Assembly: GCA_026936335.1 (NCBI GenBank)
Contig: JAPMXV010000018.1
Coordinates: forward strand, 1 to 64,000
Source of the DNA: Mantamonas sphyraenae STR306
Taxonomy: Eukaryota > Protista > CRuMs
DNA: 64,000 nucleotides
Direction of reading: 5' to 3'
The notes beneath the pieces are model-generated. The model searched no databases and was not told the origin of the DNA. It saw only the letters and a list, made by a program, of their open reading frames with translations. Position numbers and translations under genes: made by a program. Positions 4,089 through 51,582 of this stretch are shown piece by piece; positions within the stretch are counted from its first letter, which is position 1, and each line of letters starts with the position of its first letter.

Positions 4089-4105
4089 ACCACACCTTCA
4101 TTCTG

Positions 4106-5651
4106 TCACCCTCCCCTCCCCACCCACTCCACCACCCTCTCCATCACCTCATCTGGCAGTGTCACCCACCCTTCCCACCCTCTCTCCTCCACATACGCCT
4201 CCATCCCCCCACACCCAAACATCACCTCCCTCTCCTCCCCATTCATCACCAACGCCACCTCCATCGCCTCATCCACCTCCCCACCCCATCCAATCCAATG
4301 CCACGCCTTCCTCCACCCTTCCTCCCTCACCATCTCCACCGTTTCCATCCTTGGCTTAGCGCCCCAAGCTCGCAACACCTGCACAATCTCCTCATCCCCT
4401 TTCTCGACTGCTCTCTCCAGCGCAGTCTCCTCACCTCCATCCCCTGCAAACGTGTCCACAGGCACCCCCCACTCCCTCAACTCTTTCATCCTCTCCACAT
4501 CCCCACACTCCACAAACTCCACGTGCTGCTTCTTGTTTCTCTCCAACAGCAACTGCAACGCGTCATCGCGATTGTTTCTCTGAAACACAAACTGTGGCGT
4601 GTTGTCGCGATTCTTGTTTCTCTCCAACAGCGACTGTGGCGCGTTGGAGCTAACGCCGGCGATTTTCCAGCATGACCGATTGCCTTTCATCGCTTGAGCA
4701 AGTGTTGCGGCACCTTCTGCACTGATGCTGTTGTCGTTGATGTTCAGTGCCTGCAGGCTACTGTTCTCACTCAGTGCCCGCGCCAGTGCCGCTGCACCTT
4801 CGTCCCCGATGCTGCGGTCATTGATGTTCAGTGTCTTCAGGCTGCTGTTCTCACACAACGCCCGCGCCAGTGCCGCTGCTCCTTCGTCCCCGATGCTGTT
4901 GAGGCTGAGGTCCAGCGTCTGCAAGCTGCTGTTCTCGCTCAGTGCCTGCGCCAGTGCTACTGCTCCCTCTACCCCAGTGCCGCTCCAGCTGAGCTTGAGT
5001 GTGTGCAAGCTCTGGTTCTCCCGCAGTCCCCGGGCCAGTGCTGCAGATCCCTCACCCCCACAGTTGTTCCAGCAGAGGTTCAGTGTCTGCAAGCTGCTGT
5101 TCTCACTCAGTGCATGCCCCAGTGCTGCCGTTCCTTCTGCTCCAATGTTGTTGTAGAAGAGGATCATTGTGTGCAAGCTCTGGTTCTCACTCAGTCCCTG
5201 CGCCAAAGCTGCCGCTCCTTCGTCCCCGATCATGTTGTTTCCGAGGTCCAGTGTCTGTAAGCTGCTGTTCTCCTTTAGCGCCTGCGCCAGTGCTGCTGCG
5301 CCTTCGTTCCCAGTGCCGCACCAGCTGAGGTTGAGTGTGTGCAAGCTGCTGTTCTGAGCTAGTGCCCGCGCAAGTGCCGCTGCTCTTGCTTCTCCCAGCC
5401 CCCGACCAAGCTCCAGCTTTTGTGTGTGTCGTGTCAACACAAGTTCCACCCTGCGTACTCACCATAACACCCACCCCACACCCATCCCTCCTTCCCTTCC
5501 CCTTGTGCGACGCCCAAACGTCACTTCACCAAAACTCCCTCCCGATTTCTTTCCGCCAACTCACCGTTCCCTGAGCCTCCAAAGCTTCCACAATCTGCTC
5601 ATGGTCCCCGCTCTTCAACAAGTCAAACCACTGACGGAGGTTCAAGTCCAT
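4106..5651 (-). CDS. RI-like (NLRC3-type, 28-aa) leucine-rich repeat protein with ankyrin-like segment and conserved C-terminal tail
   Basis: Repeated 'ALAxALxENSSLQTLxLxxNxIGDEGA'; 'ETALERAVEKGDEEIVQVL' is ankyrin-like. Predicted intron 5451-5529 joins MDLNLRQ...REFW to VELVLT in frame. Confidence 0.88.
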
Positions 5652-28259: not shown

Positions 28260-28497
28260 TGACATGATGCACGAGTGGGTCGGGCGTGGTGCACACGATG
28301 GCACTGGTTTGTGGGGGGCAGCGCTCTGGATGCGGCGTTGGAGACGGCGTTGGTGATGAATGGAGAAGAGAGGGAGGTGATGTTTGAGTGTGGCGGGATG
28401 GAAGGGTATGAGGCGAGTGTGAGTGGTGGACCCTGCCGGATGAGGTGATGGAGAGAGTGCTGGGGTGGATGGGTAGGGAGGAGTGGGACAGAGTGTG
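28260..28497 (+). pseudogene. Frameshifted relic of the C-terminal tail of the LRR/ankyrin gene family
   Basis: 'WHWFVGG...LETALVMNGEEREVMFECGGME...TLPDEVMERVLGW' matches the 4106-4300 tail; 1-nt deletion relative to the 39308-39461 copy. Confidence 0.8.
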
Positions 28498-30297
28498 ATG
28501 TGCAGGATGTTTGGTTTGTGCTCTTGTCCCGGCACGCAAACCCAATCAGCAAATGAGTGACACAAGATCCAAGTTGATGGCCAAAAAGAGTGGAATGACC
28601 AAGGTGTGTTGTGTGCAGCCATGTAGGGAGACGCGGAGAGAGAGGAGGGGAGGGGGGGACGTGTGCTGACGTGTGTGGGTGCAGCCTCACCTGGGGGTCG
28701 CGGTGTTGGGACATGTGGACAGTGGAAAGTCGACGCTTGTGGGCCACTTTCTTGCTCTGTGTGGAATGTTGGACTCGCGCACGTTGGAAAAGTACCGTGC
28801 AGAGGCCATCGAGCACAATATGGGGTCGTATCGCTATGCGTGGATCTGTGACAAGCTCAGCGACGAGAGGGAACGCGGCATCACAATCAACGGGTCGCTG
28901 CATCGGCTGGAAACGGAAAAGTACGAACTGTCGGTGTTTGACGCGCCGGGATGTCGAGACTTTACAAAGAACTTGCTGACTGGGCTGTCGCAAACGGACG
29001 TGGGCATTCTGGTTGTGTCTGCGGCGCGGGGCGAGTTTGAGGCTGGGATTTCCCGCGACGGGCAGACGCGAGAGCACGCGCTGCTGGCACTGACAATGGG
29101 TGTGAATCGCCTGATTGTGGTGGTGAACAAGATGGACGAAGCATTCTATGACGAGGGGCGGTATGATGAGGTGAAGGAGGAAACGGCAAAGGTGTTGAAA
29201 AAGATCGGGTTCCTGGAAAAGGACGTGACGTTTGTGGCAGCAAGTGCTTTTCGTGGACTGAACCTGACGTACGCGGGCCACCAGGAAAAGTTTGAGTGGA
29301 ACAAGACACCGACGCTTCTGCGTGCGCTGGACGAGCAGCCGAGGCCGGAGCGTGCTGTGGCGCGACCGCTGAGGATGCCCGTGCAGGATGTGTACAAGAT
29401 CAGGGGTGTGGGCACAGTGGTTGTGGGTAGGGTGGAAGCCGGTACGCTGAGGCAGGGCATGAAGGTTGTGGTTGGACCGTCTGGAGTCACGGCAACGGTG
29501 GAGCGGATCGAGTCGTACCACCGAGATCTGAAGCAGGCTGGAGCAGGGCTGCATGTGGGAGTGAGTTTTGGCAGTCAGCTGTCCAAAGCACAGGACCTGA
29601 AACGCGGCTTTGTGATCGGCAGTGCGGACAGCTCTGCACCCAAAGTGTGCGAGAGCTTCACGGCGCGTGTGGTGATCCTGAACCATCCCAACTGGATCCG
29701 CCCCGGCTACACGCCCGTGCTGGACGTGCACACGTCGCACATTGCATGCAAGATGACTGAGCTGATCGAGGTGTACCACCCGGTCAAGGGAAACGTGATT
29801 GACAGCGAACCGGCCTACATCAAGAAGGGCGACCACGCACTGGTGCGGTTTGTTCCAACCAAGCCGCTGTGTGTGGAGGCGTTCAAGGACTGTCCGCAAC
29901 TGGGACGCTTCTCGCTGCGGGATCTTCGCAGAACGGTTGCCGTGGGCAAGATCATCGATGTGGAGGGAGAGGACCTGAAGGACTGGGCCAAGGAAAAGGC
30001 AATGGCAAAGAAGCAGCAGGCAAAGATGGAGAAGGAGAAGGAGCAGGGAGGGGAGAAGGAGGAGGCAGCTGGTGAGGCAGACCAGGATCCACAACCGAGC
30101 AGCAAGGACCCGGAGGAGGAGAGCTGATGTGGACGTGTGTGCGTGTGGGGGGCGTGTGTGTGGGGGGGGGGGGGATGGAGGGCAATGGAACAGCAAGCAT
30201 CAAGCATCCAGCATCAAACAGCAAACCACGTTCATTCACATGGCAAAGAGAGCCAGGGAGACCAAGAGGGTGGCACAGAAGGTCCAGATGCTCGTGG
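28346..30297 (+). repeat. Segmental inverted duplication, copy 1 (partner 37520-39461)
   Basis: Near-identical to the reverse complement of 37520-39461, including upstream region, intron, CDS and 3' flank. Confidence 0.97.
28577..30127 (+). CDS. Divergent EF-1alpha-like translational GTPase, copy 1
   Basis: Exon 1 MAKKSGMTK, intron 28604-28684; GHVDSGKST, ERERGITI, DAPGCRDF, NKMD, 'PLRMPVQDVYKIRGVGTV.VGRVE', 'LGRFSLRDLRRTVAVGKI'. Confidence 0.93.
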
Positions 30298-37519: not shown

Positions 37520-39461
37520 CCACGAGCATCTGGACCTTCTGTGCCACCCTCTTGGTCTCCCTGGCTCTCTTTGCCATGTGAATGAACGTGGTTTGATGTT
37601 TGATGATGGATGCTTGATGCTTGCTGTTCCATTGCCCTCCAACCCCCCCCCCCCCCCCCCTCCACACGCACACACGTCCACATCAGCTCTCCTCCTCCGG
37701 GTCCTTGCTGCTCGGTTGTGGATCCTGGTCTGCCTCACCAGCTGCCTCCTCCTTCTCCCCTCCCTGCTCCTTCTCCTTCTCCATCTTTGCCTGCTGCTTC
37801 TTTGCCATTGCCTTTTCCTTGGCCCAGTCCTTCAGGTCCTCTCCCTCCACATCGATGATCTTGCCCACGGCAACCGTTCTGCGAAGATCCCGCAGCGAGA
37901 AGCGTCCCAGTTGCGGACAGTCCTTGAACGCCTCCACACACAGCGGCTTGGTTGGAACAAACCGCACCAGTGCGTGGTCGCCCTTCTTGATGTAGGCCGG
38001 TTCGCTGTCAATCACGTTTCCCTTGACCGGGTGGTACACCTCGATCAGCTCAGTCATCTTGCATGCAATGTGCGACGTGTGCACGTCCAGCACGGGCGTG
38101 TAGCCGGGGCGGATCCAGCCGGGGTGGTTCAGGATCACCACACGCGCCGTGAAGCTCTCGCACACTTTGGGTGCAGAGTTGTCCGCACTGCCGATCACAA
38201 AGCCGCGTTTCAGGTCCTGTGCTTTGGACAGCTGACTGCCAAAACTCACTCCCACATGCAGCCCTGCTCCAGCCTGCTTCAGATCTCGGTGGTACGACTC
38301 GATCCGCTCCACCGTCGCCGTGACCCCAGACGGTCCAACCACAACCTTCATGCCCTGCCTCAGCGTACCGGCTTCCACCCTACCCACAACCACTGTGCCC
38401 ACACCCCTGATCTTGTACACATCCTGCACGGGCATCCTCAGCGGTCGCGCCACAGCACGCTCCGGCCTCGGCTGCTCGTCCAGCGCACGCAGAAGCGTCG
38501 GTGTCTTGTTCCACTCAAACTTTTCCTGGTGGCCCGCGTACGTCAGGTTCAGTCCACGAAAAGCACTTGCTGCCACAAACGTCACGTCCTTTTCCAGGAA
38601 CCCGATCTTTTTCAGCACCTTTGCCGTTTCCTCCTTCACCTCATCATACCGCCCCTCGTCATAGAATGCTTCGTCCATCTTGTTCACCACCACAATCAGG
38701 CGATTCACACCCATTGTCAGTGCCAGCAGCGCGTGCTCTCGCGTCTGCCCGTCGCGGGAGATCCCAACCTCAAACTCGCCCCGCGCCGCAGACACAACCA
38801 GAATGCCCACGTCCGTTTGCGACAGCCCAGTCAGCAAGTTCTTTGTAAAGTCTCGACATCCCGGCGCATCAAACACCGACAGTTCGTACTTTTCCGTCTC
38901 CAGCCGATGCAGCGACCCGTTGATTGTGAGGCCGCGTGCCCTCTCGACGCTGAGCTTGTCACAGATCCACGCATAGCGATACGACCCCATGTGGTTATCG
39001 AAAGCCTCTTTACGGTACTTTTCCAACGTGCGCGCGTCCACCATTCCACACAGAGACAGAAATTGGCCCACAAGCGTCGACTTTCCACTGTCCACATGTC
39101 CCAACACCGCGACCCCCAGGTGAGGCTGCACCCACACACGTCAGCACACGTCCCCCCCACCCTCTCTCTCCGCGTCTCCCTACATGGCTGCACACAACAC
39201 ACCTTGGTCATTCCACTCTTTTTGGCCATCAACTTGGATCTTGTGTCACTCATTTGCTGATTGGGTTTGCGTGGCGGGACAAGAGCACAAACCAAACATC
39301 CTGCACATCACACTCTGTCCCACTCCTCCCTACCCATCCACCCCAGCACCCTCTCCATCACCTCATCCGGCAGGGTCCACCACTCACCACTCGCCTCGTA
39401 CCCTTCCATCCCGCCACACTCAAACATCACCTCCCTCTCTTCTCCATTCATCACCAACGCC
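37520..39461 (-). repeat. Segmental inverted duplication, copy 2
   Basis: Reverse complement of 28346-30297; carries only the last ~20 codons of the 30236 gene. Confidence 0.97.
37683..39229 (-). CDS. Divergent EF-1alpha-like translational GTPase, copy 2
   Basis: Same structure as copy 1 (intron 39126-39202); G2 region reads ERARGLTI; DAPGCRDF retained. Confidence 0.93.
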
Positions 39462-39462
39462 A
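39308..39462 (-). pseudogene. 3' half of a host ORF interrupted by the Fanzor element (5' half at 45543-~45900)
   Basis: 'ALVMNGEEREVMFECGGMEGYEASGEWWTLPDEVMERVLGW' continues in frame from 'GGKETAGLE' on the far side of the insertion. Confidence 0.75.
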
Positions 39463-42400
39463 GTTGAGCGCGCTTTTGCAGGTACACGCACAGGGGCAAT
39501 AAAGTATTGAAACAGCCACATGTCCTTGTCATGTCGGTGCTCCATGGTGTGCTTGCTCAATCGATAGTCCCTCAGCAGGGATTGCAGCGGTTGAAACCCG
39601 CTGCAACCCCTCCTGGAAATGAACTCAGTGTCGTACGAATCGTCCATGTCATCTACGTACGTCTCTACCGTGCACACTCGCGCCTGGGTTCGTACCCATT
39701 GCATGGAAAAGACAATACCAGCGTGGAGACTGGGATCCCCTGGTAGTGCGTCCCCATCACCTGAACCTGCGGCTACCCGTTGATTCCAATGCACTTGGCC
39801 GCACACCCCTCTATTCACCTGCTGCACCGGCGTGTATTAGCTCGCCGTCTGATTGAGCAGCGGGTTCGCAGCCCGAGCAGAACCAACGTAGCGACACTCT
39901 GTGCCAGGTATGGTCCTCACGCGTGGAGACCACCGTCGCGACGCGTCCAAAAAGTACAATTGCAACCTTTCGGATGTTGAGATGGACGCTGCCTGGATAC
40001 ACGACGAGTACAGGGCAAACGGAAAGTCACCGCCAAGAGTGCAAATTCACCCGTCCGCCTTCCACTTCCTGTGCCATACAACAGGCAAATCGCATCGCTG
40101 TCGGGTTCCCATTGCATCGGAGGAGCATTTCCGTGTGGTTCTGAGGCTGATGCGGTATGCAATTAGCACCTTGACCCGGTATAGGGTCGACACAGAGGGC
40201 GCGCTGCAGTTCCAGCTGGTTTGTGCGCTTCTGTCGCTGGTGGCTGGTGTCGGGGTGTATGATGTCCCCCAGAAGACTCTGCACATGTTCAAGCGGCACT
40301 CTACCATCATCACCACCACCCCAATCATCATGGAAGCGGCCTACAGTGCGTCCGACGTCGCGCACAACACGGAAAATGCAACGTCTGCTCTGAAACGCGC
40401 AGTTTGTGACGCAGCACAGAGCGGAGCCCTGTGTCGCGACTGCGGTTGGGTTACTGAAACCGGCCTCTACACGGGTGACCAGTTGACGGCTCTGGCCGAG
40501 ACGCTCTCGGCTGAAACGGAGCGCAAGTTCGAGATTGAAACATGCGTTTCTCCAAGGCACCCTATACCGGGCAGCCACGTCTCTTCCTGTTTCAACATGA
40601 CCCAACGCACGGATCCCAACACGCGTCCCGTCGTCCACATGGCGGACAGTCTGAGCACTCGCGAAATGCGCGACGGGTTCGGCGGGAAGAAGCGCAATCC
40701 TGCACATCAGCCTCAGGTGTCAGCGGGCGAAACGCACCATTGCACGCAATTGTTTGTGTTGCACGTGGAAGACATGATCGTACGCCACATGGCAGCTGCA
40801 TCTGCTCCCGCGAAACCCAGCTCCCCCCTGGACAGGGCACCTGCAGGTTCGTCAACGCCACTCTGCACCTCAAGCACATCCAGCTCCTCCTCCTCCTCCT
40901 CTTCTTCTTCTTCTTCCTCCTCCTCCTCCTCATCGTCATCAGTGCTGGACAAGGCCGTGGATTCCTTTTGCGACGAGCTGGATGAGTTGCGAGGTCGATT
41001 CAACTTGGTTCCGGACACGGTCACACTCTATCTCCACAGCAACACCGTGGCTTCGGTGGACACGACTCTGGCCCAGTTCAACAGGAGGGAACTGGTTTTG
41101 GAAGCCGAACTTGCGCACAAGTTTGACATCTCGGTGTCTCACGTCCACACTGCAGTCAAGCAGAGGTGCGAGCAGAGAGGCGTGAAGGTTGTTGAGCATA
41201 CTGCCGCAACGTCAAGGTGCCTCCGGGATGCTTGTGACGGTGAAACCTTGCTGTGGTGCCCAACCAACGATGGGACTGTGCTTCGGGCCGGTATTTGGGT
41301 CAACGCACAAGGCGATGCCATCAGACTGATCCAAGACGACCATGCCGAAAGGCTTGTCTGCGCAATCCTCTGTGGCTCGACGACTCTGGATGTGTCGATG
41401 TCATTGGTGGGCGAGACGCACAAGGCGGTGGACATGGTGCGAGCTGGCGGTCTGCTGAATCTCAAATCTGTGACCAAAACCGCAGGGTTGAGCAGGTTGC
41501 GCAAGCCAGAGAGAGACCAGCTGCACGCTGAGACCGTCCGAGCCATGTGCTCCGTGCTTAGTTCGGCTGCCCTGGACCGTGTCAACGAGCGTCTGACCGA
41601 ACATCTCACCCACACGACACTGGCTTCGTGCTCCCTGGACGGCCAGGGCGAGGACGAGGTGTCCATCCAGGGCACAGAGTGTCTCCTGGAAGCGATGCGT
41701 GCCATGCCACCGAGGGCAGCTGGAGTCATGGCCGACCTGCTTCGCCGATTCCCGCATGGAACACGCGTGCGGGATGTGATTGCTCTGGTGCACGAAGCAG
41801 TGGAAGCACAGCCGACAGAGCGACCATCTGTCGGTGTCAGCCGTACCTGCGTTTTTGTGCGCCGCAGGATGGTTCATGGGCGGACCCTCCACCTGTTCCT
41901 CGAGCAGGACTCCATCGAGTGCGGGTCACTTTTGCAAGCAATGGGTGTCCAACACGTGTTGGACGCACTGAATGGTGCTCAGCTGGAGGAGTGGGCATGC
42001 GTCATCCGCCGTTTGGTGCAAGCAGAACAGGACCTCGTGTCAATCGCCAAGGCAGAGGCCGATGCCACGGAGTACGTGGAACAAGATACCTGGAACGAGT
42101 TTTTGGCAGCACTGGACAAATTCGAGGAATCAAATGCACTGACGCAAAGGTTCAGCCAGTCGACGACCAAACTCGACTCGGCAACGATCGAGCAGCTGCG
42201 TGCGTCTGCCCCGAAGGCCAGCAAGGTGCTCTCCTTGCCCACAGGAGTGAAGCTGATGCGCATTGTTCCGCACAAACCCAAGAAGCCAAAGGCAGAACGG
42301 CCGCTGCTGAGCGAGTCGTGGCCGGACTTCTTGAGCGACAAGCTGGGACGCATTGTCAAGGGTGTCGCAAACGCGACTGTGACACACACAGACGTCCTCA

Positions 42401-45400
42401 CAAGCAAGACTGTCAAGTTTACGCGAAGCAAAGGCCAGGTGAGGCAGGTGGAGCACGGCAGCGAGCCGCTGGCAGGCATGGCGGCCGAAGTGCAAGATGC
42501 GGATCGACGTGGGTACGAAAAGCAGCGGCACGAGCTGCTTCTCCACTTGGACGGCATTCTTCCAAACTCCTCAAGCAAGGAAGAAGATGTGACGGAAGAG
42601 GGGGAGGGGAAGGAGAAGGAGACGAGTGAGGGGAAGGGGAAGGGGAAGGCGGCGGTGGAAGCGATGGACACCCAGTGCGAACTGCCTGCCGTGCTGGCGA
42701 AGGACGAGCAGTTGGAGGCCGTGGAAACGCTGGAGGAGATGGAAGAAGACGATCAACAGCGCCGGATCGAGGACATCGAGCGCATTGACACGCGGCTCAA
42801 CTCGGTGCAGGGATGTGCCAGCTTTGAACAGCTCGTCGATGCCCTGCTACAGCTCAAAGACACCGTGTCAAGTGGACAAGAAGAGTATCCCAAGGCACGC
42901 GTGGACGGTATCTGGGAGGCAACGGGTGCAGCGAGGTTTCGGCATGATTTCGACTTGATGATGACAACAATCGAATTCGCGTTGCGAGAGTTTGTCCGCC
43001 TGTACGCAATCCGAGCCGGACTCGCAAGCAACTACAAACAGGCAGACGCCCTATTGTCGAGACTGACAAACATCAAGATCAAGGGACGGAAGCGCCGGTT
43101 GATGCAAGAGGTTGCGGTTGACGCACAATGCGAGGAAGAAGAGGATGAGGATGAGGAGTACATGGAGGACGATGATGACGCAGTTGACGAGGAGCAGGAG
43201 GAACAGGAAGAGCAGGAGCAAGAAGAGCTGGAGGAGCAGGAGGAGCAGGAACAGAAAGAGCTGGAGGAGCAGGAGGAACAGAAAGAGCTGGAGGAGCAAG
43301 AAGAGCTGGAGCAGGAGACAAAGGGGGCCATCGTGACGCAGGAGATCATCACATTTGCCAACAAGTGGGGAAACTTCATCCGTGGCCTTCAGCGCCTCCA
43401 GCGAGGGAGAGCGGTGGACACTCTGGTGTGGCCGGAAAAGACCACCATCATGGGGAATGCATCGTCCCGCGAAACGATACGCGCACGTCTGTGTCTGCTG
43501 GCTCTGGTGCTGGCAAACGTGGTGTTTGCCACACGTGGTGTGAATCTCAAACATGCCGACCTGTCCAGCTTCGCCATGGCCACATGGCTGGCACGCAGGG
43601 CCGGTGGCCGCCAGCGACGATTTCTGCCAGCCCCCCGCCGAACATCAGCCCCCCACACCATTGCGTCTGCCCAGCGTGGGCTCGACGTCGCTCTGCTTCA
43701 ACGCGAGGAAACCTCTTTGCTGTACGTACATTTCAAAAAAGCCGTGGATGCAGTCATGAGTGCTACGGACGACAAAGTGCAGCGCCAGCTGCTTTGGGAG
43801 CTGAAAGCGGAAATGCTCGCGGGGCTACAGGAGCTTCCTGAGCACATTCGACTGGCGTGCCATGCCGCTTCGTTGGTGGACTACAATCTCTGTCTTCGGA
43901 GCGACGACAAATTGCGCCAGGACGAGTTGCTCGTGTACCACGATCTGATTCGCGATCTTGCCGTTGGTCCCCGTGGAACAAACCCGTTCCTCCGCGCCCA
44001 ACTGGCCAATGATCTCATTTTCAAGGGTGACCGCGTCGCATCGACACGATACAAACCACAGGCGTGGAGCTTCCAAGATTTGCATACTCTGCCCGAGTCG
44101 TCAGCGAGCAAAAGGCGGGTTGGGCTTGGAGACGACACAAACGCAGCCGTGCCTTTTTTCAACTCCCTTGTCCACTGGGCTGACAACAGAACGGACACAA
44201 TCAGCTCTCACAAGCTCTGCACCATTGGCTACAACATGTGGAGGGAGTTTGGAAATGATTGGAGCCAGATTCTCACAGCCGCATTGAATGCGCAGCTGGC
44301 GGATCGTGAGGCGGCCCAACTCATCGACCGTGTGGTGAGCACTATCAAGGACCATGCTCCCCCTTGTTTGCAGAAGCTAAAGGATGCAATGGAGGCACGT
44401 GACCTGGACAAAGAAACGCAAGGGCAGCTGGAGGAAGCGTGGGACGACATTGAGAAATCCATGCGAGGAAAACCCGCGAGCAAACAACTTGCACTGTCGA
44501 CGTCGTGGTGGCCGCGCACCGGCGTGGCGAACGTGGAGGAACCGTCGTCCGCATCGTCGTCGTCGTCTGCATCATCGTCGTCGTCTGCATCGTCGTCGTC
44601 GTCGTCGTCCTCGGACACAACAATGATGACACGCTGGGCATCCAGTGTTCATGGGTTGTGTGCAGGCTATGATCCAGGTGTGTACCAGCACATTGGTGCC
44701 CTCGTTTTGTACTTTGACAGCGTTACGGTGTCCGAGAAGAACGGCGTTTTGTGCATCAGCTACGCGCTCACATTCGACATCAAAGGTACAAATGTTCGCT
44801 ACGAGCAGAGGCGATCGGGTCATGCAGAGATCTCCAACAAGCTCAGCAAGCTGGGCAAGCAGCTTTCCAACGCTGCGAACGCAGCAAAACGTTTGGAAAT
44901 CAACGAGGAGATGAACACGCTGGCGCACGACTTGAAGCCAATTCAAGAGCATATGGCGCGGTTAATCAAACACGGAAGCGCAGCAGTGATGGCTGACCTC
45001 CAACGACAGTGCAACCACCGAATTCATGTCGGATACGGAGCAGCGCCCGTTGTAGCAAGCGTGCCTGTGCGTACGGATGCCGCCCAACTGGCCTGTGTCT
45101 CCACAGTCACCCTGACGCACGAACCGCAAACATCCAAACACTCTGCGTACGACTGTAAAGCCGTTCGAAAGCATGCTTGGAGCGTGGACAAGAGTGGGTC
45201 ACGGAACGATCGGTGGTATGTGCACGACGTGGCCAGCAAGACGCTGCGAGACGGAGAGGAGTGGGTGGCGCACAAGGACCGCAGTGCTGCCATCAACATC
45301 GCCAACAAATGCCATGCAGCTCGTCGGTGTGGTGTCGAGCTGTGGCTATTCACGTGGGTCTGGAGCAGCAATCGGGGGCATCTACAAGAGGCGGCCCGCA

Positions 45401-45542
45401 AGGCCATGCATGATGGACAAGATGCAGGCCATGGGGGTCAAAATGTCCAAGTGGTGTTGTAGATGATTGTTGTGGTGAAATACTTGTGAAAACTAGCGCC
45501 TGTATGCGGCGCGAGGTGATTTGCAAAATACAATCATCAACC
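39463..45542 (+). mobile_element. ~6.08-kb Fanzor-encoding insertion element with degenerate terminal inverted repeats; ends uncertain by a few to ~14 nt
   Basis: Removal restores the host frame (GLE-V-ALVM). Termini GTTGA...TCAAC(C) with further collinear inverted blocks; single giant RuvC ORF; 3' hairpin. Confidence 0.82.
39901..45462 (+). CDS. Giant Fanzor1-like (TnpB-derived) RuvC nuclease, 1853 aa (first ATG at 39910)
   Basis: RuvC-I 'AGYDPG' (D1591, nt 44671); helical bridge region; 'IHVGYGAA..SVPVR...V.LTHEPQTSK' with rearranged catalytic E1741 (nt 45121); RuvC-III 'KDRSAAINI' (D1793, nt 45277). Confidence 0.88.
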   Translation: MPGMVLTRGDHRRDASKKYNCNLSDVEMDAAWIHDEYRANGKSPPRVQIHPSAFHFLCHTTGKSHRCRVPIASEEHFRVVLRLMRYAISTLTRYRVDTEGALQFQLVCALLSLVAGVGVYDVPQKTLHMFKRHSTIITTTPIIMEAAYSASDVAHNTENATSALKRAVCDAAQSGALCRDCGWVTETGLYTGDQLTALAETLSAETERKFEIETCVSPRHPIPGSHVSSCFNMTQRTDPNTRPVVHMADSLSTREMRDGFGGKKRNPAHQPQVSAGETHHCTQLFVLHVEDMIVRHMAAASAPAKPSSPLDRAPAGSSTPLCTSSTSSSSSSSSSSSSSSSSSSSSSVLDKAVDSFCDELDELRGRFNLVPDTVTLYLHSNTVASVDTTLAQFNRRELVLEAELAHKFDISVSHVHTAVKQRCEQRGVKVVEHTAATSRCLRDACDGETLLWCPTNDGTVLRAGIWVNAQGDAIRLIQDDHAERLVCAILCGSTTLDVSMSLVGETHKAVDMVRAGGLLNLKSVTKTAGLSRLRKPERDQLHAETVRAMCSVLSSAALDRVNERLTEHLTHTTLASCSLDGQGEDEVSIQGTECLLEAMRAMPPRAAGVMADLLRRFPHGTRVRDVIALVHEAVEAQPTERPSVGVSRTCVFVRRRMVHGRTLHLFLEQDSIECGSLLQAMGVQHVLDALNGAQLEEWACVIRRLVQAEQDLVSIAKAEADATEYVEQDTWNEFLAALDKFEESNALTQRFSQSTTKLDSATIEQLRASAPKASKVLSLPTGVKLMRIVPHKPKKPKAERPLLSESWPDFLSDKLGRIVKGVANATVTHTDVLTSKTVKFTRSKGQVRQVEHGSEPLAGMAAEVQDADRRGYEKQRHELLLHLDGILPNSSSKEEDVTEEGEGKEKETSEGKGKGKAAVEAMDTQCELPAVLAKDEQLEAVETLEEMEEDDQQRRIEDIERIDTRLNSVQGCASFEQLVDALLQLKDTVSSGQEEYPKARVDGIWEATGAARFRHDFDLMMTTIEFALREFVRLYAIRAGLASNYKQADALLSRLTNIKIKGRKRRLMQEVAVDAQCEEEEDEDEEYMEDDDDAVDEEQEEQEEQEQEELEEQEEQEQKELEEQEEQKELEEQEELEQETKGAIVTQEIITFANKWGNFIRGLQRLQRGRAVDTLVWPEKTTIMGNASSRETIRARLCLLALVLANVVFATRGVNLKHADLSSFAMATWLARRAGGRQRRFLPAPRRTSAPHTIASAQRGLDVALLQREETSLLYVHFKKAVDAVMSATDDKVQRQLLWELKAEMLAGLQELPEHIRLACHAASLVDYNLCLRSDDKLRQDELLVYHDLIRDLAVGPRGTNPFLRAQLANDLIFKGDRVASTRYKPQAWSFQDLHTLPESSASKRRVGLGDDTNAAVPFFNSLVHWADNRTDTISSHKLCTIGYNMWREFGNDWSQILTAALNAQLADREAAQLIDRVVSTIKDHAPPCLQKLKDAMEARDLDKETQGQLEEAWDDIEKSMRGKPASKQLALSTSWWPRTGVANVEEPSSASSSSSASSSSSASSSSSSSSDTTMMTRWASSVHGLCAGYDPGVYQHIGALVLYFDSVTVSEKNGVLCISYALTFDIKGTNVRYEQRRSGHAEISNKLSKLGKQLSNAANAAKRLEINEEMNTLAHDLKPIQEHMARLIKHGSAAVMADLQRQCNHRIHVGYGAAPVVASVPVRTDAAQLACVSTVTLTHEPQTSKHSAYDCKAVRKHAWSVDKSGSRNDRWYVHDVASKTLRDGEEWVAHKDRSAAINIANKCHAARRCGVELWLFTWVWSSNRGHLQEAARKAMHDGQDAGHGGQNVQVVL

Positions 45543-45897: not shown

Positions 45898-48800
45898 TCA
45901 TTGCAACACTCCGCGCATCCTCGCTTCTGCCACACGCCACTTCCTCCCACTTCCACGCACCGCACGGAACCGTGCACGTCGCCCCAGCTCTCCGTGTGCA
46001 TGTTGACCCACCCTTGCAAACACCTCCCGAGCCCCACGCCGCCTGCCCAGCGCTTCCAACACGTCCGCCAAGTTGAACAACACCCCGCCACGCAGCGGAT
46101 GCGCCTCCTCCAACCCCATTCCCTCCATCACTGCGTCGCTTTCCTCCAAAAGGTTACGTGCCTCAGTCAGCTGTCCCCTACGCGCTGCGTTCATCGCACG
46201 GTTGCTCACCGTGACCGCATACCGCAGATCCGCACGCCCCAGCCCTTCCACCACGTCCTTGTACGCCTCCTCCGCCTCGTCGTGCTGTCCTGCCGCAGCG
46301 TGCACACTTGCCATCACGCTACGGCACTCCAGCCACAGCCGGTGCCGTTGGCCCACCAGCTGACCAAACACAGACAACGCCTCACCCGCCATGCCCAACG
46401 CAGGCTCCAGCACGCCCCGACGACGAAGCAGAATCGCCATGTTCGTCAGCACACACGCCGTGCGCACGTGCCGCACCCCAACCAGGCCTTCGCACACCTC
46501 AAACGCCTCCCGAAACAGCGTCGCCGCACGCTCCTCATCCCCAACCTCCATGGCGTGCACAGCCACGTTGTTCAGCGACTCGGCAACCTCAAGGCTGCGG
46601 TCTCCGTAGCAGTGTCGCCGGATCGCAAGCGCGTGTTCCAGATGCACTCCAGCCACAGCCATCCGTCCCATCCGCTGTTCCGCCACCCCAAGGCTGTTCC
46701 ACTGCCGGCCCATCTCTGCGTGTCCCGGTCCCAGCACACGTTGCACTTCCCCCGTCGCCGCCAACAACCGCGCCACAGGCCCGTTCGACCCCACCCCGCT
46801 TTCGCCCACCTCCACACTCAACACAGCCTCGTAGGTTCGGCTGATGCTCTCCAGTGCCACGTGCACCTGCCTCTCCAGCGCCTCTTTGTTCAGCTGCAGT
46901 CCTTGCGCCAGCACCGTCGCTCCAGAGTCCAGATGCAGCAATGCACGCGACGCTCGCTTCGTCTCACGTCCAAACACCGCCCCGAGCTCCAAACTCCCCG
47001 CAGGCAGCACCTCCTCGCGCAACACACGCAACGCACCTGCCACGTCTCCCTCCCCGTCTGCAAGCACCATGGCCATGTTGTGCATCAGTCCAGCTCGAGC
47101 ACTCGCCTCCTCTCCGCCCACAAGTTCCAGCGCACGCTCCAGCTGCCGCTTCCCGTGCTCAGCCTCCATGCTCCCTGCCATCTCGCTCAACAGGCCCGCC
47201 AGTGCAATTCCGTTCTCCTGACGTCGCTGCCGCCCAACCAGCAGTTCTTGATACATCCTCTGCGCCTCGTCCGTGCGTCCCACGCGTGCATACCCTCGCG
47301 CAAGCACCTCTCGCCAAACCTCCTCCTCCTCCCCTCCCTGCCCGCCGCCTGCTGCCCCTTCAATCCGCAACATGTCTTCCAACTCACCCACCATGTCCAC
47401 ATAATCGCCGTGGTCCTCCAAAAACAACACCAGGTCCTGTCGCGTGCGCAGCGAGTGCCGATGCGACCGCGGTCCCTCCGCCCCGTCCAAGTGCTCCTGT
47501 TGCACAAGTGCCACCATGCGGTACAGCCGGTACGCCACATCGTACCGTCCCGACGCGTCACACAGCGTCGCCACATCCAGCAGTGCACTCAGCACACGTT
47601 TGTGCTTCGGCCCCAATTGTGCGTGCAACACATTCAGTGTCCGCAGCATCACGGGCTCCGCGTCGCTCACCTGACCCTGACGCACATACAGCATGCCCAA
47701 CTCGTGCAGCGGCTCCGCAAGCAACAGATGCGTACCCCCAACCTCCCGCTGCACAAGCGACAACGCCTCCAGCAGCAGTCCTTCCGCCTCGCTCCATTGG
47801 CCCTCACACTGCGCCACAATGCTCAGTTGACGCAGCGACGACGCAATTTCCAGCTGCAGCTCGCCACGCAACGCCTCGTTGCCCTCTGCAGACGCAAGCG
47901 CACGCCGTGTGTCCAACACCGCAGCCAGCGTCTCCCGTGCCTCCTCCACACGGCCTTGCTTCAACACACTCATCGCAACCCTGTCACGTGCCCCAAGTGT
48001 ACGCCTGTGCTCTTCGCCCAACACCTGTTCCAGCACAGCCACTGCTCCGGCGTACTCCCGCTCCGCTTCTGCAAACGCCTCGGCTCGTTCATGCAACCCG
48101 CCGCGCTCCAGCAACACAGCCGCCTCCAGCTCTCCGTGCACCTCTTCCAGTCCCATGGCCTCGTTCAGGTGTCTCTGCGCTTCCGCAAGCTTGCCCTGCA
48201 GCACACACAGACGCGCAACCGCTTGCAGCGACGTCACATTGTTCGGCCGCCTCGCAAGTACACGCCTCTGCAGTGCCTCCGCACCACGGTGCTCCCCAAG
48301 CTGCTCCAGCACACGGCACAGGTTGTCCAGCAGGTCCGCGGGCGCGTTTTCCTCCCCGTAGATTCCCAACGAGCGCTCCATCAGCTCTTTCGCCTGCTCC
48401 AACTGACCACGCTTTGCAAAGATGGCCGCCATGTTGTTCAACGCCGACGCAAATCGCAGCGTGTGGTCATCCTCTTGTTCTGCCAGCACACACACAAGTT
48501 GCTTCAGATGCGCCATCGCAGCAACTCCTTTGCCCAGCCGCATCTCCACACGCGCCAGCTTTTCCAGCACCCCGGCTGTCACCTCGCCCGCTTCCACCAC
48601 GGCCAGAAGCTGAGCTTGTGCCGCCGCAAACTTGTCCTGACGCATCAACACCGTCGCCAGCCGCTCTCTGTGCTCTGCTGTCCCGCTCAGCGACACCAGG
48701 CGCTTGTACGTCGCTTCTGCTTTGGCCAGCTTTTCGCCACGCACATACAGCGCCGCCAGATTTGCCAGATACATGGGCAGCCGCGTTGTGTCGCCCACAC

Positions 48801-51582
48801 GCTCGGCCAGCGCCACTGCTGTCTCTCCTTGCTCCTCTGCGCTCGCCATCTTGCCACGCGCCATCTGCACACGCATCATTGTGTTGGCGTACAGCGCCAG
48901 CAGCCAGTGCTGCGACCCAAAGAGGCTTTCCACGATAGCCATCGCCTGGCCACACTGTGCCTTGGCCTGCGCCGTGTCTCCCTTGTCCAGCGCCAGCAGC
49001 GCCATTTGGTGCAACACCCTGGCCGTGTCCAGGTGCCGTTCATCCAGCGACGTGCTGTACAGCTGCAACGCACGCTCGTACAGCGCTCCAGCCTCTCTGC
49101 GCGGCGCAACCTCCGCAAGCATCGCCATGCTCTCAGCCACGTCTGGGTTAAACTTGGCACGTACGTCGCAGGCGTATTGCACACGCAGTGCACGCTGCAA
49201 CACCTCTGCCGCCTTGCCTGGTTGCTCCATGTCATCCCACAGCTGTGCCAGGTCCTGCAGCACGACCGCATACGCCAAACTCTCCAAGGACGGCAGCATG
49301 CGCGCTGCACTCTCCATCAGTGCCAAGGCATCCCCGTGCCGGCCCAGCGCTCCCAGGGCCACCGCAAGGTTCGACTGGGCCATTGCAAGCGTCTCTCCGT
49401 CCGCTTCGTCGTTCTCCAGCAGCACCATTGCTTCGCGGTACCATTGTGCCGCCTGCTTCGTGTGTGCCGTCTCGTGCGCCATGCACATGTCTGCACACCG
49501 CGTCAGCGCCTCGGCCAGCCCGCGCGCCTCAAATTGGTTTTCTCGTCGCCGCAGCGACAGCGCAAGCTCCATGTGCTTCACGCTCACAATGCCCAGCGTA
49601 AAGTAGAGCCCAACAAGCTCTTCCATGCTACGCGCCACAGCAAGTGCATAGTGGCCATGCATGCGTTCTGTCATGTCCACACGCAGCAGCAACAGCGCCT
49701 CTGCCAGTGCGTACTTTCCCGTCAGCGCTGCCTCCTCCACCGCATCCACGCCCAGCAGCTGCCGCACCGTGACCACACTGCTCACGTCCTCGCTGCGCAC
49801 CTTGTGATCCACGTCTTCCTGCTGCTCCTGCTCCTCCTCCTCCTGCTCCTCTTCTGCCTGGCCCTCGTCCAGATGCAATACGTGTGCGCGCAGCCGTTTC
49901 CACCCGCGTCCTCCCACCCCCTCCTGTTGCCGCAAGAGTGCAAACTCGCCCGAACTGCGATCCACCTGCACGCGCAGGCTGCGTGAAACACGTACGCCAA
50001 TCAGCGAGCACGTGCGCCGCAGCAACGTCGACAGCCACGCCTTGAGCTGCTCCACGCCGCGCACAACTTCCAGCAGCTGACGAGAGAACAGTTCGTCGTC
50101 TGCCAGCGCAAACACAAACTTGCTGGTCAGCGGCTCAAACAGTTCCAGCCACGCCTCTGGCTGACCGTTCATCACGCCGTCCACGACGTCGGCCACAAAC
50201 GCGCTCAACTCCGCCTCGTTGTCCATCTGCTGCGCCACAACCACACTCTTGATACTGCGCGCCACCATTTCCAGCAACAGTGCTTCCTTGACCCCGCGGT
50301 GCGTCACGCACTGGCGCAACACGCCCACAAAGCGTACGTTCACGCCTGCCCCCTGCACCATGCGCACCAGCCTGCCCAGCTCCTCCTCCGACGCATATGC
50401 CAGCTCGTGTGTGTCATACCATGAGTCCAGAAAAGCAGCCAGGCTCGGTACAACGCCCGTCAGCAGCTTGCGGTTCGCCACAAGCACCGCTCGGTCGTGT
50501 TCGGCGCTCTCAATGGACCCAAAGCCCGTCAACGCATCCGGTGACAACGGCACACACATACGCAGCGCATACTCGGGTCGAAGCCGTGCACTGTGGTCAA
50601 ATGCCACCGACGGACCCAGCGGCGTCACCACGGGCAGCAGGCGCGTGGGATTGCACACGTACAACACGCCCGTGCTTGCATCTCGCCGCAGCTGCACGTC
50701 GCCTGCAAGTGTGCACAGCGCCTGGTTTTGTCCGTTGATGCCACTCTGGTGCTCCGCAATGTTCAACGCGGCACCCAACTGGGCTGCAACCTCGGCCGTC
50801 TGACGGTCGCGCACCACAAAATCCAACGTGCTCGTGTCCATCCCGTACGCCAGACTGCTGTCGCTCTCCACATCCCACGTCACCACATAGGTGTGCGGTG
50901 CACGGTACACCACCGCTGTCAACGGCACGCGCACGCCCAGGTCCTTGCTGCTGCCCAGCAACGTCCGCAACACCGTGTCCGTTGCGCGCAGCATGTTGCC
51001 CGCTCGCTTGCGTCCGCACGCGTGCACACGCAGAAATCCAGGCACATCCTCAGGCACATGCCGTGCCACAAAGTCTGCAAATCGGTTCAGCACCACGCGT
51101 ACCGCATACACCAGCCGCTGCCGTCCCAGCGGGTCTGACAACGTCGGCACAAGCGACACCAGGTGGTTCAGCCGCCCCTGCAACTTGGCCGCACGGCCCA
51201 CAGAGCATTGGTTCGGGTGAAGCTGCGGCACGGGGTGTGGCGCAACCACAGTCCCCTTTTCCATGTCTCCCTTTCTCCCCTTGTTCCCTCCCAGTAGCGC
51301 CTGAAGCCGCCCAGACGGACGCGAGAGGGCCCCGCTTTCCAGTTCGTTCTCCTCTGGCCGCCACTCGTACAGCGGGTACAGCGGTGACGGCGGCACCTGC
51401 TTGCGTGTGTACACGTTGCTTGCCAGCTGCTCCTTCAATGCTGCCCGCCCATCGATTGCCTCTGCGTACAGCGCGTCCCCGAAAAAGCTCGAATCGTCCA
51501 CTTCCTCCTCCTCCTCCTCCTCCTCGTTGTCTGTCGCCTCCCTTCCTTTGCCCTGTCCATCCTCCACCCACACCTCTTCCAC
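45898..51582 (-). CDS. Clu (clustered-mitochondria) domain protein with long TPR array; true start probably further upstream
   Basis: 'LRPEY....VPLSPDALTGFG', 'GVNVRFVG.LR', 'LLLEMVARSIK' Clu motifs; many kinesin-light-chain-type TPRs ('VAESLNNVA', 'LGEEH..T'). Confidence 0.87.
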   Translation of the reverse strand: MEEVWVEDGQGKGREATDNEEEEEEEEVDDSSFFGDALYAEAIDGRAALKEQLASNVYTRKQVPPSPLYPLYEWRPEENELESGALSRPSGRLQALLGGNKGRKGDMEKGTVVAPHPVPQLHPNQCSVGRAAKLQGRLNHLVSLVPTLSDPLGRQRLVYAVRVVLNRFADFVARHVPEDVPGFLRVHACGRKRAGNMLRATDTVLRTLLGSSKDLGVRVPLTAVVYRAPHTYVVTWDVESDSSLAYGMDTSTLDFVVRDRQTAEVAAQLGAALNIAEHQSGINGQNQALCTLAGDVQLRRDASTGVLYVCNPTRLLPVVTPLGPSVAFDHSARLRPEYALRMCVPLSPDALTGFGSIESAEHDRAVLVANRKLLTGVVPSLAAFLDSWYDTHELAYASEEELGRLVRMVQGAGVNVRFVGVLRQCVTHRGVKEALLLEMVARSIKSVVVAQQMDNEAELSAFVADVVDGVMNGQPEAWLELFEPLTSKFVFALADDELFSRQLLEVVRGVEQLKAWLSTLLRRTCSLIGVRVSRSLRVQVDRSSGEFALLRQQEGVGGRGWKRLRAHVLHLDEGQAEEEQEEEEQEQQEDVDHKVRSEDVSSVVTVRQLLGVDAVEEAALTGKYALAEALLLLRVDMTERMHGHYALAVARSMEELVGLYFTLGIVSVKHMELALSLRRRENQFEARGLAEALTRCADMCMAHETAHTKQAAQWYREAMVLLENDEADGETLAMAQSNLAVALGALGRHGDALALMESAARMLPSLESLAYAVVLQDLAQLWDDMEQPGKAAEVLQRALRVQYACDVRAKFNPDVAESMAMLAEVAPRREAGALYERALQLYSTSLDERHLDTARVLHQMALLALDKGDTAQAKAQCGQAMAIVESLFGSQHWLLALYANTMMRVQMARGKMASAEEQGETAVALAERVGDTTRLPMYLANLAALYVRGEKLAKAEATYKRLVSLSGTAEHRERLATVLMRQDKFAAAQAQLLAVVEAGEVTAGVLEKLARVEMRLGKGVAAMAHLKQLVCVLAEQEDDHTLRFASALNNMAAIFAKRGQLEQAKELMERSLGIYGEENAPADLLDNLCRVLEQLGEHRGAEALQRRVLARRPNNVTSLQAVARLCVLQGKLAEAQRHLNEAMGLEEVHGELEAAVLLERGGLHERAEAFAEAEREYAGAVAVLEQVLGEEHRRTLGARDRVAMSVLKQGRVEEARETLAAVLDTRRALASAEGNEALRGELQLEIASSLRQLSIVAQCEGQWSEAEGLLLEALSLVQREVGGTHLLLAEPLHELGMLYVRQGQVSDAEPVMLRTLNVLHAQLGPKHKRVLSALLDVATLCDASGRYDVAYRLYRMVALVQQEHLDGAEGPRSHRHSLRTRQDLVLFLEDHGDYVDMVGELEDMLRIEGAAGGGQGGEEEEVWREVLARGYARVGRTDEAQRMYQELLVGRQRRQENGIALAGLLSEMAGSMEAEHGKRQLERALELVGGEEASARAGLMHNMAMVLADGEGDVAGALRVLREEVLPAGSLELGAVFGRETKRASRALLHLDSGATVLAQGLQLNKEALERQVHVALESISRTYEAVLSVEVGESGVGSNGPVARLLAATGEVQRVLGPGHAEMGRQWNSLGVAEQRMGRMAVAGVHLEHALAIRRHCYGDRSLEVAESLNNVAVHAMEVGDEERAATLFREAFEVCEGLVGVRHVRTACVLTNMAILLRRRGVLEPALGMAGEALSVFGQLVGQRHRLWLECRSVMASVHAAAGQHDEAEEAYKDVVEGLGRADLRYAVTVSNRAMNAARRGQLTEARNLLEESDAVMEGMGLEEAHPLRGGVLFNLADVLEALGRRRGAREVFARVGQHAHGELGRRARFRAVRGSGRKWRVAEARMRGVLQ

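Follow-up and report, generated by a model that had tools for sequence, protein, structure and literature searches.

Fanzors are eukaryotic relatives of CRISPR-Cas12. Both they and the TnpBs are viewed as passengers whose effect is to preserve transposons, movement itself being the work of a separate transposase. The Fanzor1 proteins SpuFz1, GtFz1, and PpFz1 (PMC10432273, PMC11423790, PMC10711439) have a C-terminal RuvC domain with a DPG motif, a glycine at the RuvC-II site, a glutamate in ExxTS, and a final DxxAAxN, encoded beside a conserved structured transposon end. They are mostly 600 to 700 amino acids (aa) long (PMC11423790), and a C4 zinc finger between the glutamate and the last aspartate is part of the defining Fanzor motif (PMC3627910, PMC10711439). 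The host elements given in a 2026 review are of the DDE, Helitron, Crypton, and IS607 types only (PMC13565253). Here, we describe a 6-kb mobile element from the CRuMs protist Mantamonas sphyraenae STR306 (FALCON assembly; PMC10492846), whose only gene encodes a Fanzor-like protein about three times the usual Fanzor1 length. It lies in a window of 64,000 nucleotides (GenBank assembly GCA_026936335.1, contig JAPMXV010000018.1, positions 1 to 64,000), and searches for relatives covered the whole genome (25,061,354 bases, 78 contigs). We read it as an autonomous or semiautonomous DNA transposon of undescribed type, with a protein that appears to join a degenerate FEN/XPG domain to a Fanzor-derived RuvC. 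The architecture is new, and the mode of transposition possibly so. We found no natural Fanzor-FEN/XPG fusion in the papers searched, and no host element like this one appears in the 2026 review (PMC13565253).

Two groups of described elements share features with the one reported here. The Fanzor1 elements CRe-1/2/3 of Chlamydomonas are of the Helitron2 type and have Fanzor as their sole gene, a 3' hairpin, intact 3' ends, frequent 5' truncation, and target site duplications (TSDs) that vary between 7 and 19 bp (PMC3627910). Their ends match autonomous Helitrons in their own genome and they insert after TTTT, whereas in Mantamonas we found no Helitron partner and no T-run target; the Mantamonas element also differs in its solo 5' fragments with TSDs and in its giant fusion protein. 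Replitrons share with it a left end beside RG, variable TSDs, a right-end hairpin, and an association with rearrangement breakpoints; Replitron-1 inserts after RG, and a helper role for Fanzor has been speculated (PMC10288648). The Mantamonas element differs from them in having no HUH Rep and no evident exact terminal direct repeats or parent-derived fuzzy right ends.

The open reading frame (ORF) runs uninterrupted through 1,853 codons, as the initial annotation had it, and is covered by contigs of four sequencing runs from one study; together with the presence of several copies, this rules out an assembly artifact. It starts with GTG, the first ATG is at codon 4, and the protein probably begins there with a length of 1,850 aa. 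The residues of the proposed RuvC site, D1591 (YDPG), G1711, E1741 (ExxTSK), and D1793 (DxxAAxNI), stand exactly where they had been placed. D1591-P-G (RuvC-I) is invariant in all subfamilies of the element (A, B, and C, defined below), the relocated RuvC-II glutamate E1741 follows 150 aa later, and D1793 (RuvC-III), preceded by lysine instead of arginine, another 52 aa on (158 and 65 in SpuFz1; PMC10432273). This triad is invariant across subfamilies that are only 27 to 37% identical elsewhere. G1711 occupies the canonical RuvC-II site and is alanine in subfamily C, the next glycine being invariant. None of 200,000 protein shuffles contains the string DPG-x120-160-ExxTS-x20-75-DxxAAxN[IM], a pattern that was composed after the motifs had been seen. 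In addition, the neighbors of aa 1578 to 1853 by ESM features are all RuvC clusters, namely those of Cas12b, TnpB/Cas12f, DUF8286, and Cas12a (scores, 0.91 to 0.94).

The zinc-finger CxxC pairs are absent after E1741, also as first described, and C1752 is the sole cysteine left between E1741 and D1793. Two results tell against the RuvC assignment. Alignments of the subfamily A domain to TnpB, a Fanzor-like set, and the sister families (hhalign) do not rise above shuffles, and an AlphaFold2 model of aa 1140 to 1853 (pLDDT, 38) has an unfolded catalytic region and no REC/WED fold. The best of the nonsignificant profile alignments (TnpB/Fanzor) is motif collinear over 136 columns. Matches of the C-terminal model in VIA were discarded as coiled-coil noise, as were DARPin matches of the RuvC profile, which are sums of weak repeat matches. 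The protein has no match in Pfam, PDB, NCBIfam, or PHROG and no detectable sequence or profile similarity to Fanzor1. Among 1.84 billion representatives, phmmer found no homolog outside the Mantamonas genome (only two low-complexity matches), and word-indexed protein searches and scans of viral, metagenome, prokaryotic, and phage genomes likewise yielded no homolog of the giant protein. A zinc-less Fanzor-like (DUF8286-related) RuvC on an IMG/VR viral contig (L210:10502-11221) served as a comparator.

Taken together, a Fanzor-type RuvC at the C terminus is well supported but not proven, since motif order and spacing, invariance of the triad, purifying selection, and ESM neighbors agree with it, as do the 3' position in a transposon, the conserved hairpin behind the gene, and Fanzor-like sister families with shared termini. 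The annotated Fanzor-type reading is supported in part, by motifs, invariance, selection, context, and sister families, and has no significant subfamily A profile match. The domain is probably catalytically intact, and we infer RNA guidance. Because the zinc finger is missing and neither profile nor fold confirms the assignment, we file the protein as Fanzor-like, with no formal Fanzor membership; by fingerprint and context, it probably resembles Fanzor1 in function.

The N-terminal 1,500 or so residues had been described as unrecognized, which no longer holds for aa ~281 to 553, while about 1,000 residues are still without assignment. A resemblance of this segment to FEN nucleases was spotted by eye ahead of the structure searches. 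With VIA-align against 48,161 chains, the best nine matches are all of the FEN family (Z, 8.8 to 6.9; root mean square deviation [rmsd], 3.2 to 6.2; 122 to 190 residues aligned), led by the plastid exonuclease PEN1 (Z, 8.8; rmsd, 5.1; 185 aligned) and followed by Pol I, ExoIX, T4 RNase H, FEN1, T5 FEN, FenA, GEN1, and XPG. Foldseek and Atlas also place the FEN family first, with weak matches. These are moderate Z scores on a low-confidence model (aa 11 to 1070; pLDDT, 40). The predicted domain shares the PIN-like core and helix-three-turn-helix (H3TH) region of FEN1, XPG, EXO1, GEN1, and the Pol I 5' nucleases and differs from them in its fusion to RuvC and in the replacement of most catalytic acids in subfamily A. 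In an alignment by eye, the metal-binding cluster is represented by H288, H379, T434 to A436, T455, and S493, leaving only E290, D291, and D457 as acidic residues. Since most metal ligands are replaced, the modeled subfamily A domain is probably a DNA-junction-binding pseudonuclease.

Rather than standing alone, the ORF is the cargo of a mobile element present in multiple copies. The window copy is 97% identical over ~6.1 kb (BLAST) to copies on contigs C58, C19, and C34, with 1.0 to 1.7% substitutions; DNA similarity begins at 39461 to 39462 and ends at 45534, and the first ~8 nucleotides (nt) of the full-length 5' end, present in the C34 copy, are missing from the window copy. A query with the C-terminal region found nine full loci in three groups (100/100/100/99, 84/83, and 61/61/61% identity), and the N terminus matched at all nine as well. 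The frame is broken in three copies as assembled. An isolated ~250-bp internal piece of subfamily C, without ends, lies at C54:169079-169330. The four subfamily A copies, 1.0 to 1.7% apart, show mosaic single nucleotide polymorphism patterns and are identical over the final 350 nt. The element is recently mobile.

Purifying selection acts along the whole ORF, even among copies 98 to 99% identical. Within subfamily A, the ratio of nonsynonymous to synonymous polymorphism (pN/pS) is 0 to 0.06 in the RuvC region and 0.2 to 0.9 (mostly 0.2 to 0.4) elsewhere; between subfamilies, nonsynonymous divergence (dN) is far lower than synonymous divergence (dS). Such selection among near-identical copies is expected if the protein aids the spread of its own copy. 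Third-codon identity climbs toward the 3' end of the ORF, and the final kilobase shared by A and B is much younger than the rest (dS of 0.47 versus at least 2), as if a 3' module had been swapped.

A search with the 5'-end pattern recovered further elements, which we call family D, with elements of 7.9 kb, and families E and F, with elements of 6.2 kb each. All three have the 5' end in common with the subfamilies above, and their 3' ends agree as well, closely in D and E and loosely in F. Their proteins (1,550 to 1,640 aa) retain zinc-finger cysteines (four in E and F; three plus a histidine in D) and, in part, the acids of the FEN-type motifs. They match the Pfam profile Cas12f1-like_TNB weakly (E value, 2e-4), the DUF8286 Fanzor-like profile with a probability of 92% (E value, 5e-7), and mimivirus Fanzor2 marginally (E value, 0.03). 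The A/B/C and D/E/F proteins have no significant match to each other; the two groups are tied together by common DNA ends, by the order of their domains, and by motifs. With the C terminus of E as the query, we observe 36 loci, mostly ORFs of 1,300 to 2,250 aa and none of them one of the nine A/B/C loci; about 30 loci are known from the match listing, and the alignments cover the families described here. RuvC-I reads DTG, not DPG, in family F, and both F copies (L319 on C34 and L320 on C51) have an extra 343-aa ORF without family match upstream of the 1,587-aa ORF.

The terminal sequences are conserved across these families (Table 1). At the 3' end, subfamily B differs in the GC-rich stem by a double compensatory change, and the closing pair of the short terminal stem is reversed in families D and E, although the terminus as a whole folds no better than shuffles and an Rfam search gave no match. 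We regard the 3' terminus as a candidate omegaRNA scaffold end and/or transposition signal. Long terminal inverted repeats (TIRs) are absent; asymmetric inverted matches of 7 to 9 nt join the two ends in A and C, with none in B.

Insertion junctions carry direct repeats with a mean best length of 6.6 bp, against 2.5 bp for mismatched flank pairs (permutation P < 1e-5), and 7 of 17 reach at least 7 bp, where the null maximum is 6. TSD length is thus variable, at 4 to 14 bp. The last bases of the element are usually the same as those directly before the TSD, and the end of the TSD usually overlaps the element's first (C)AG. The junctions show microhomology. Left junctions end in AG in 10 of 14 cases, and no T-run preference is seen. 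In addition to complete copies, there are two solo fragments, one of the 3' end (~60 nt, 8-bp TSD) and one of the 5' end (~130 nt, 7-bp TSD). A mini copy of 74 bp retains both ends, has lost its interior at a short internal repeat, and is flanked by a TSD of about 9 bp. Cut-and-paste transposition is ruled out by the absence of TIRs and of a fixed TSD, and membership in IS630/Tc1/mariner by the absence of TIRs and of a TA duplication.

Expression of the element family is probable. One run, X3, had been labeled DNA by guess; we take it for the RNA run of the study, given its uneven depth and short contigs, a contig that starts at the stop of the neighboring gene, and the listing of exactly one RNA run in the study's paper. 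X3 variants agree with the C19 copy, rather than the window copy, at 30 of 30 sites. Two X3 contigs run beyond 45534 into other flanks, making read-through past the covarying 3' hairpins probable. In both X1 and X2, contigs are only ~2.2 times as deep over the element as over unique flank despite four near-identical assembled copies, a hint that copies are heterozygous, contig depth being an unsafe measure of copy number.

For the mode of movement, we tentatively favor self-mobilization through a staggered break made by the nuclease and a copy-in primed by microhomology. The giant protein would bind RNA of the element's own 3' end, in a Fanzor-like manner, and its RuvC would cut both strands in a staggered manner, leaving 3' overhangs of about 4 to 13 nt, possibly at sites loosely resembling the element's last 12 to 14 nt. 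The two 3' ends would pair with the element termini via 1 to 11 nt of microhomology, host repair polymerases would copy the element in, and the overhang would become a TSD of variable length. Copying aborted from one or both ends would leave the solo 5', solo 3', and internally deleted mini copies. The FEN-like domain would bind flap or branch intermediates and, in those sister families whose acids are retained, may trim them as well. Copying in from the two 3' overhangs would account for the TSDs, the microhomologies, both solo fragments, and the mini copy together. We infer every biochemical step; a known Fanzor, MmeFz2, makes variable 3' overhangs (PMC10432273).

Several observations weigh against this scheme. 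The subfamily A RuvC has no significant profile match and no modeled fold. The sequence just left of insertions is similar to the element's last 14 nt (P = 2e-5 against flanks; P = 0.003 against a shuffled query), but without the best case P rises to 0.04, and control windows give P values of 0.04 to 0.1, so that this similarity is a lead only. The right flank of one copy was not found to match the target site of another, so we see no sign that classical flank-derived guides choose new sites. A clear TSD is missing from the window copy and from the family F copies. Family D contains an intact-looking ORF of the IS630/Tc1 DD34E type (DDE_3; E value, 1e-25), and Chlamydomonas elements that depend on HUH transposases show similar insertion signatures (PMC3627910, PMC10288648).

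The last two points belong to an alternative that we consider rather unlikely, in which the element is nonautonomous and moved in trans, by a Helitron2- or Replitron-like HUH enzyme or by the DDE protein of family D, and the Fanzor-like protein is a passenger homing nuclease that recuts empty alleles and modifies only the insertion signature. Movement by an HUH enzyme has the closest precedent (PMC3627910, PMC10288648), and the AG junctions, 3' hairpins, and asymmetric matches in A and C are in line with it. However, AG is often element derived and outside the TSD, the asymmetric repeat is missing in B, and an AG target-adjacent motif would lie at the TSD end opposite to the one that homing with a flank-derived guide requires. 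Of the Helitron2/Helentron hallmarks (asymmetric TIRs, 5' T start, T-run insertion), we found inverted matches only in A and C, and junctions that are mostly AG. Genome searches detected neither a Rep of the Helitron or CRESS/Replitron kind nor an extra PIF1, a weak negative, as the HUH searches had no positive control, which itself counts against the self-mobilization scheme; nor does the giant protein have a conserved HUH motif, or the genome a Viral_Rep match (also a weak negative). Subfamily A has no associated DDE, HUH, or recombinase gene, and no transposase ORF was found in families A, B, C, C', and E. In family D, the DNA of the DDE ORF is >99% identical between two copies (L314 on C11 and L316 on C57), whose Fanzor ORFs are ~91% identical, but this ORF, in the 5' part of the element, has no TIRs around it, and family D insertions have no TA TSD. 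One family D copy has no in-frame methionine ahead of the helix-turn-helix, and the DDE ORF is perhaps spliced or a remnant.

Improbable, in our estimation, is a RuvC without RNA guidance, that is, a structure-specific or protein-guided nuclease or resolvase for which the 3' hairpins are DNA signals. Loss of the zinc finger, the unrecovered REC/WED fold, 3' folding no better than that of shuffles, the lack of a flank-guide signal, and fusion to a structure-recognizing FEN module would all suit it. However, the Fanzor fingerprint residues are invariant, zinc-less Fanzor-like proteins exist, the four A copies are identical over the last 350 nt, identity at third codon positions goes up at the 3' end, and contigs of the RNA-like run extend past that end into flanks.

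We judge retroposition to be quite improbable as well. Here, the protein would bind the 3' end of its own mRNA and nick the target, and a host reverse transcriptase (RT) activity would copy the RNA by target-primed reverse transcription. LINE-like variable TSDs, 3' microhomology, ragged 5' ends, the 5'-truncated solo 3' copy, cis-type selection, and the absence of introns from this ORF speak for it. However, we found no RT motif in the giant protein and no partner RT sharing its 3' tail, as expected of a non-LTR retrotransposon; the sole RVT_1 match in the genome is telomerase-like (C3:7371-7718), and that search detected no LINE or LTR RT. The solo 5' fragment and the mini copy with both ends are hard to make by 3'-primed reverse transcription, there is no poly(A) tail, and no Fanzor-encoding retrotransposon is given in the 2026 review (PMC13565253). 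Finally, a dead relic or a domesticated host gene that keeps its motifs for a nonnuclease role is very improbable, as dispersed near-identical copies, sharp ends, TSDs, an invariant triad, and strong selection outweigh the mostly lost FEN acids and the three broken frames.

At the window copy, the left end abuts the exact end of an inverted duplicate (Table 1), which suggests that the locus was rearranged when the element inserted or that copies recombined later; we looked for a TSD that would enclose the duplicated left flank together with the element and found none. Each copy of the 1.95-kb duplication holds a 484-aa gene of the EF-Tu/eEF1A GTPase family (28673-30127, plus strand; 37683-39137, minus strand). 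Positions 39311 to 39462 (and likewise 4099 to 4303 and 28299 to 28495) are the minus-strand 3' coding end of a repeated gene family; its members occur at many loci, often as tandem arrays and close to the ends of contigs, and the end of the peptide looks F-box-like by eye. Convergent with the 3' end of the element is a gene for a 1,894-aa TPR/NPHP3-like repeat protein (45898-51582, minus strand).

Table 1. Features of the element and its left flank, in window coordinates
Feature	Positions	Strand	Basis or remark
Left flank, duplicating window 28346-30297 in inverted orientation (1.95 kb, 97.5%)	37520-39461	-	Ends exactly at the element's left end; window copy without TSD
Mobile element, complete copy of subfamily A (6,073 bp) with one ORF and neither long TIRs nor a transposase ORF	39462-45534	+	Sharp boundaries common to copies on C58, C19, and C34
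Conserved 5' terminus common to families A to F (AG, G-rich triplet, T-run, TTGAG-CG)	39462-39490	+	Copy comparison
Strong hairpin in the 5' untranslated part	39572-39616	+	z = -4.2; 0 of 200 shuffles fold as well
Giant ORF, 1,853 codons	39901-45462	+	Only gene of the element; likely start ATG 39910
Predicted FEN/XPG-family 5'-nuclease fold (PIN core and H3TH region), aa ~281 to 553, broken by a poly-Ser tract	40741-41559	+	Structural alignment of model
Predicted Fanzor-type split RuvC with zinc-less TNB-like insert (D1591, G1711, E1741, D1793)	44653-45462	+	Motifs, ESM features, selection
Conserved 3' terminus, 5-bp GC-rich stem followed by short terminal stem	45493-45534	+	Copy comparison

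With very divergent families that together occupy at least 45 loci of a 25-Mb genome, these elements could, although we hold this with considerable doubt, represent a new class of transposase-free eukaryotic transposon, in which an RNA-guided Fanzor-derived nuclease with a flap module would itself pick and cut targets with RNA of its own end and steer host repair to copy in 6 to 8 kb. A family without transposase and TIRs, with variable TSDs and a giant Fanzor-like protein under selection, makes it testable whether TnpB or Fanzor can itself drive transposition and create TSDs, a question raised previously (PMC3627910, PMC10288648). If the scheme is right, a single natural protein would suffice to insert several kilobases of DNA in a eukaryote, and no earlier system of this kind from the CRuMs lineage came up in our searches.

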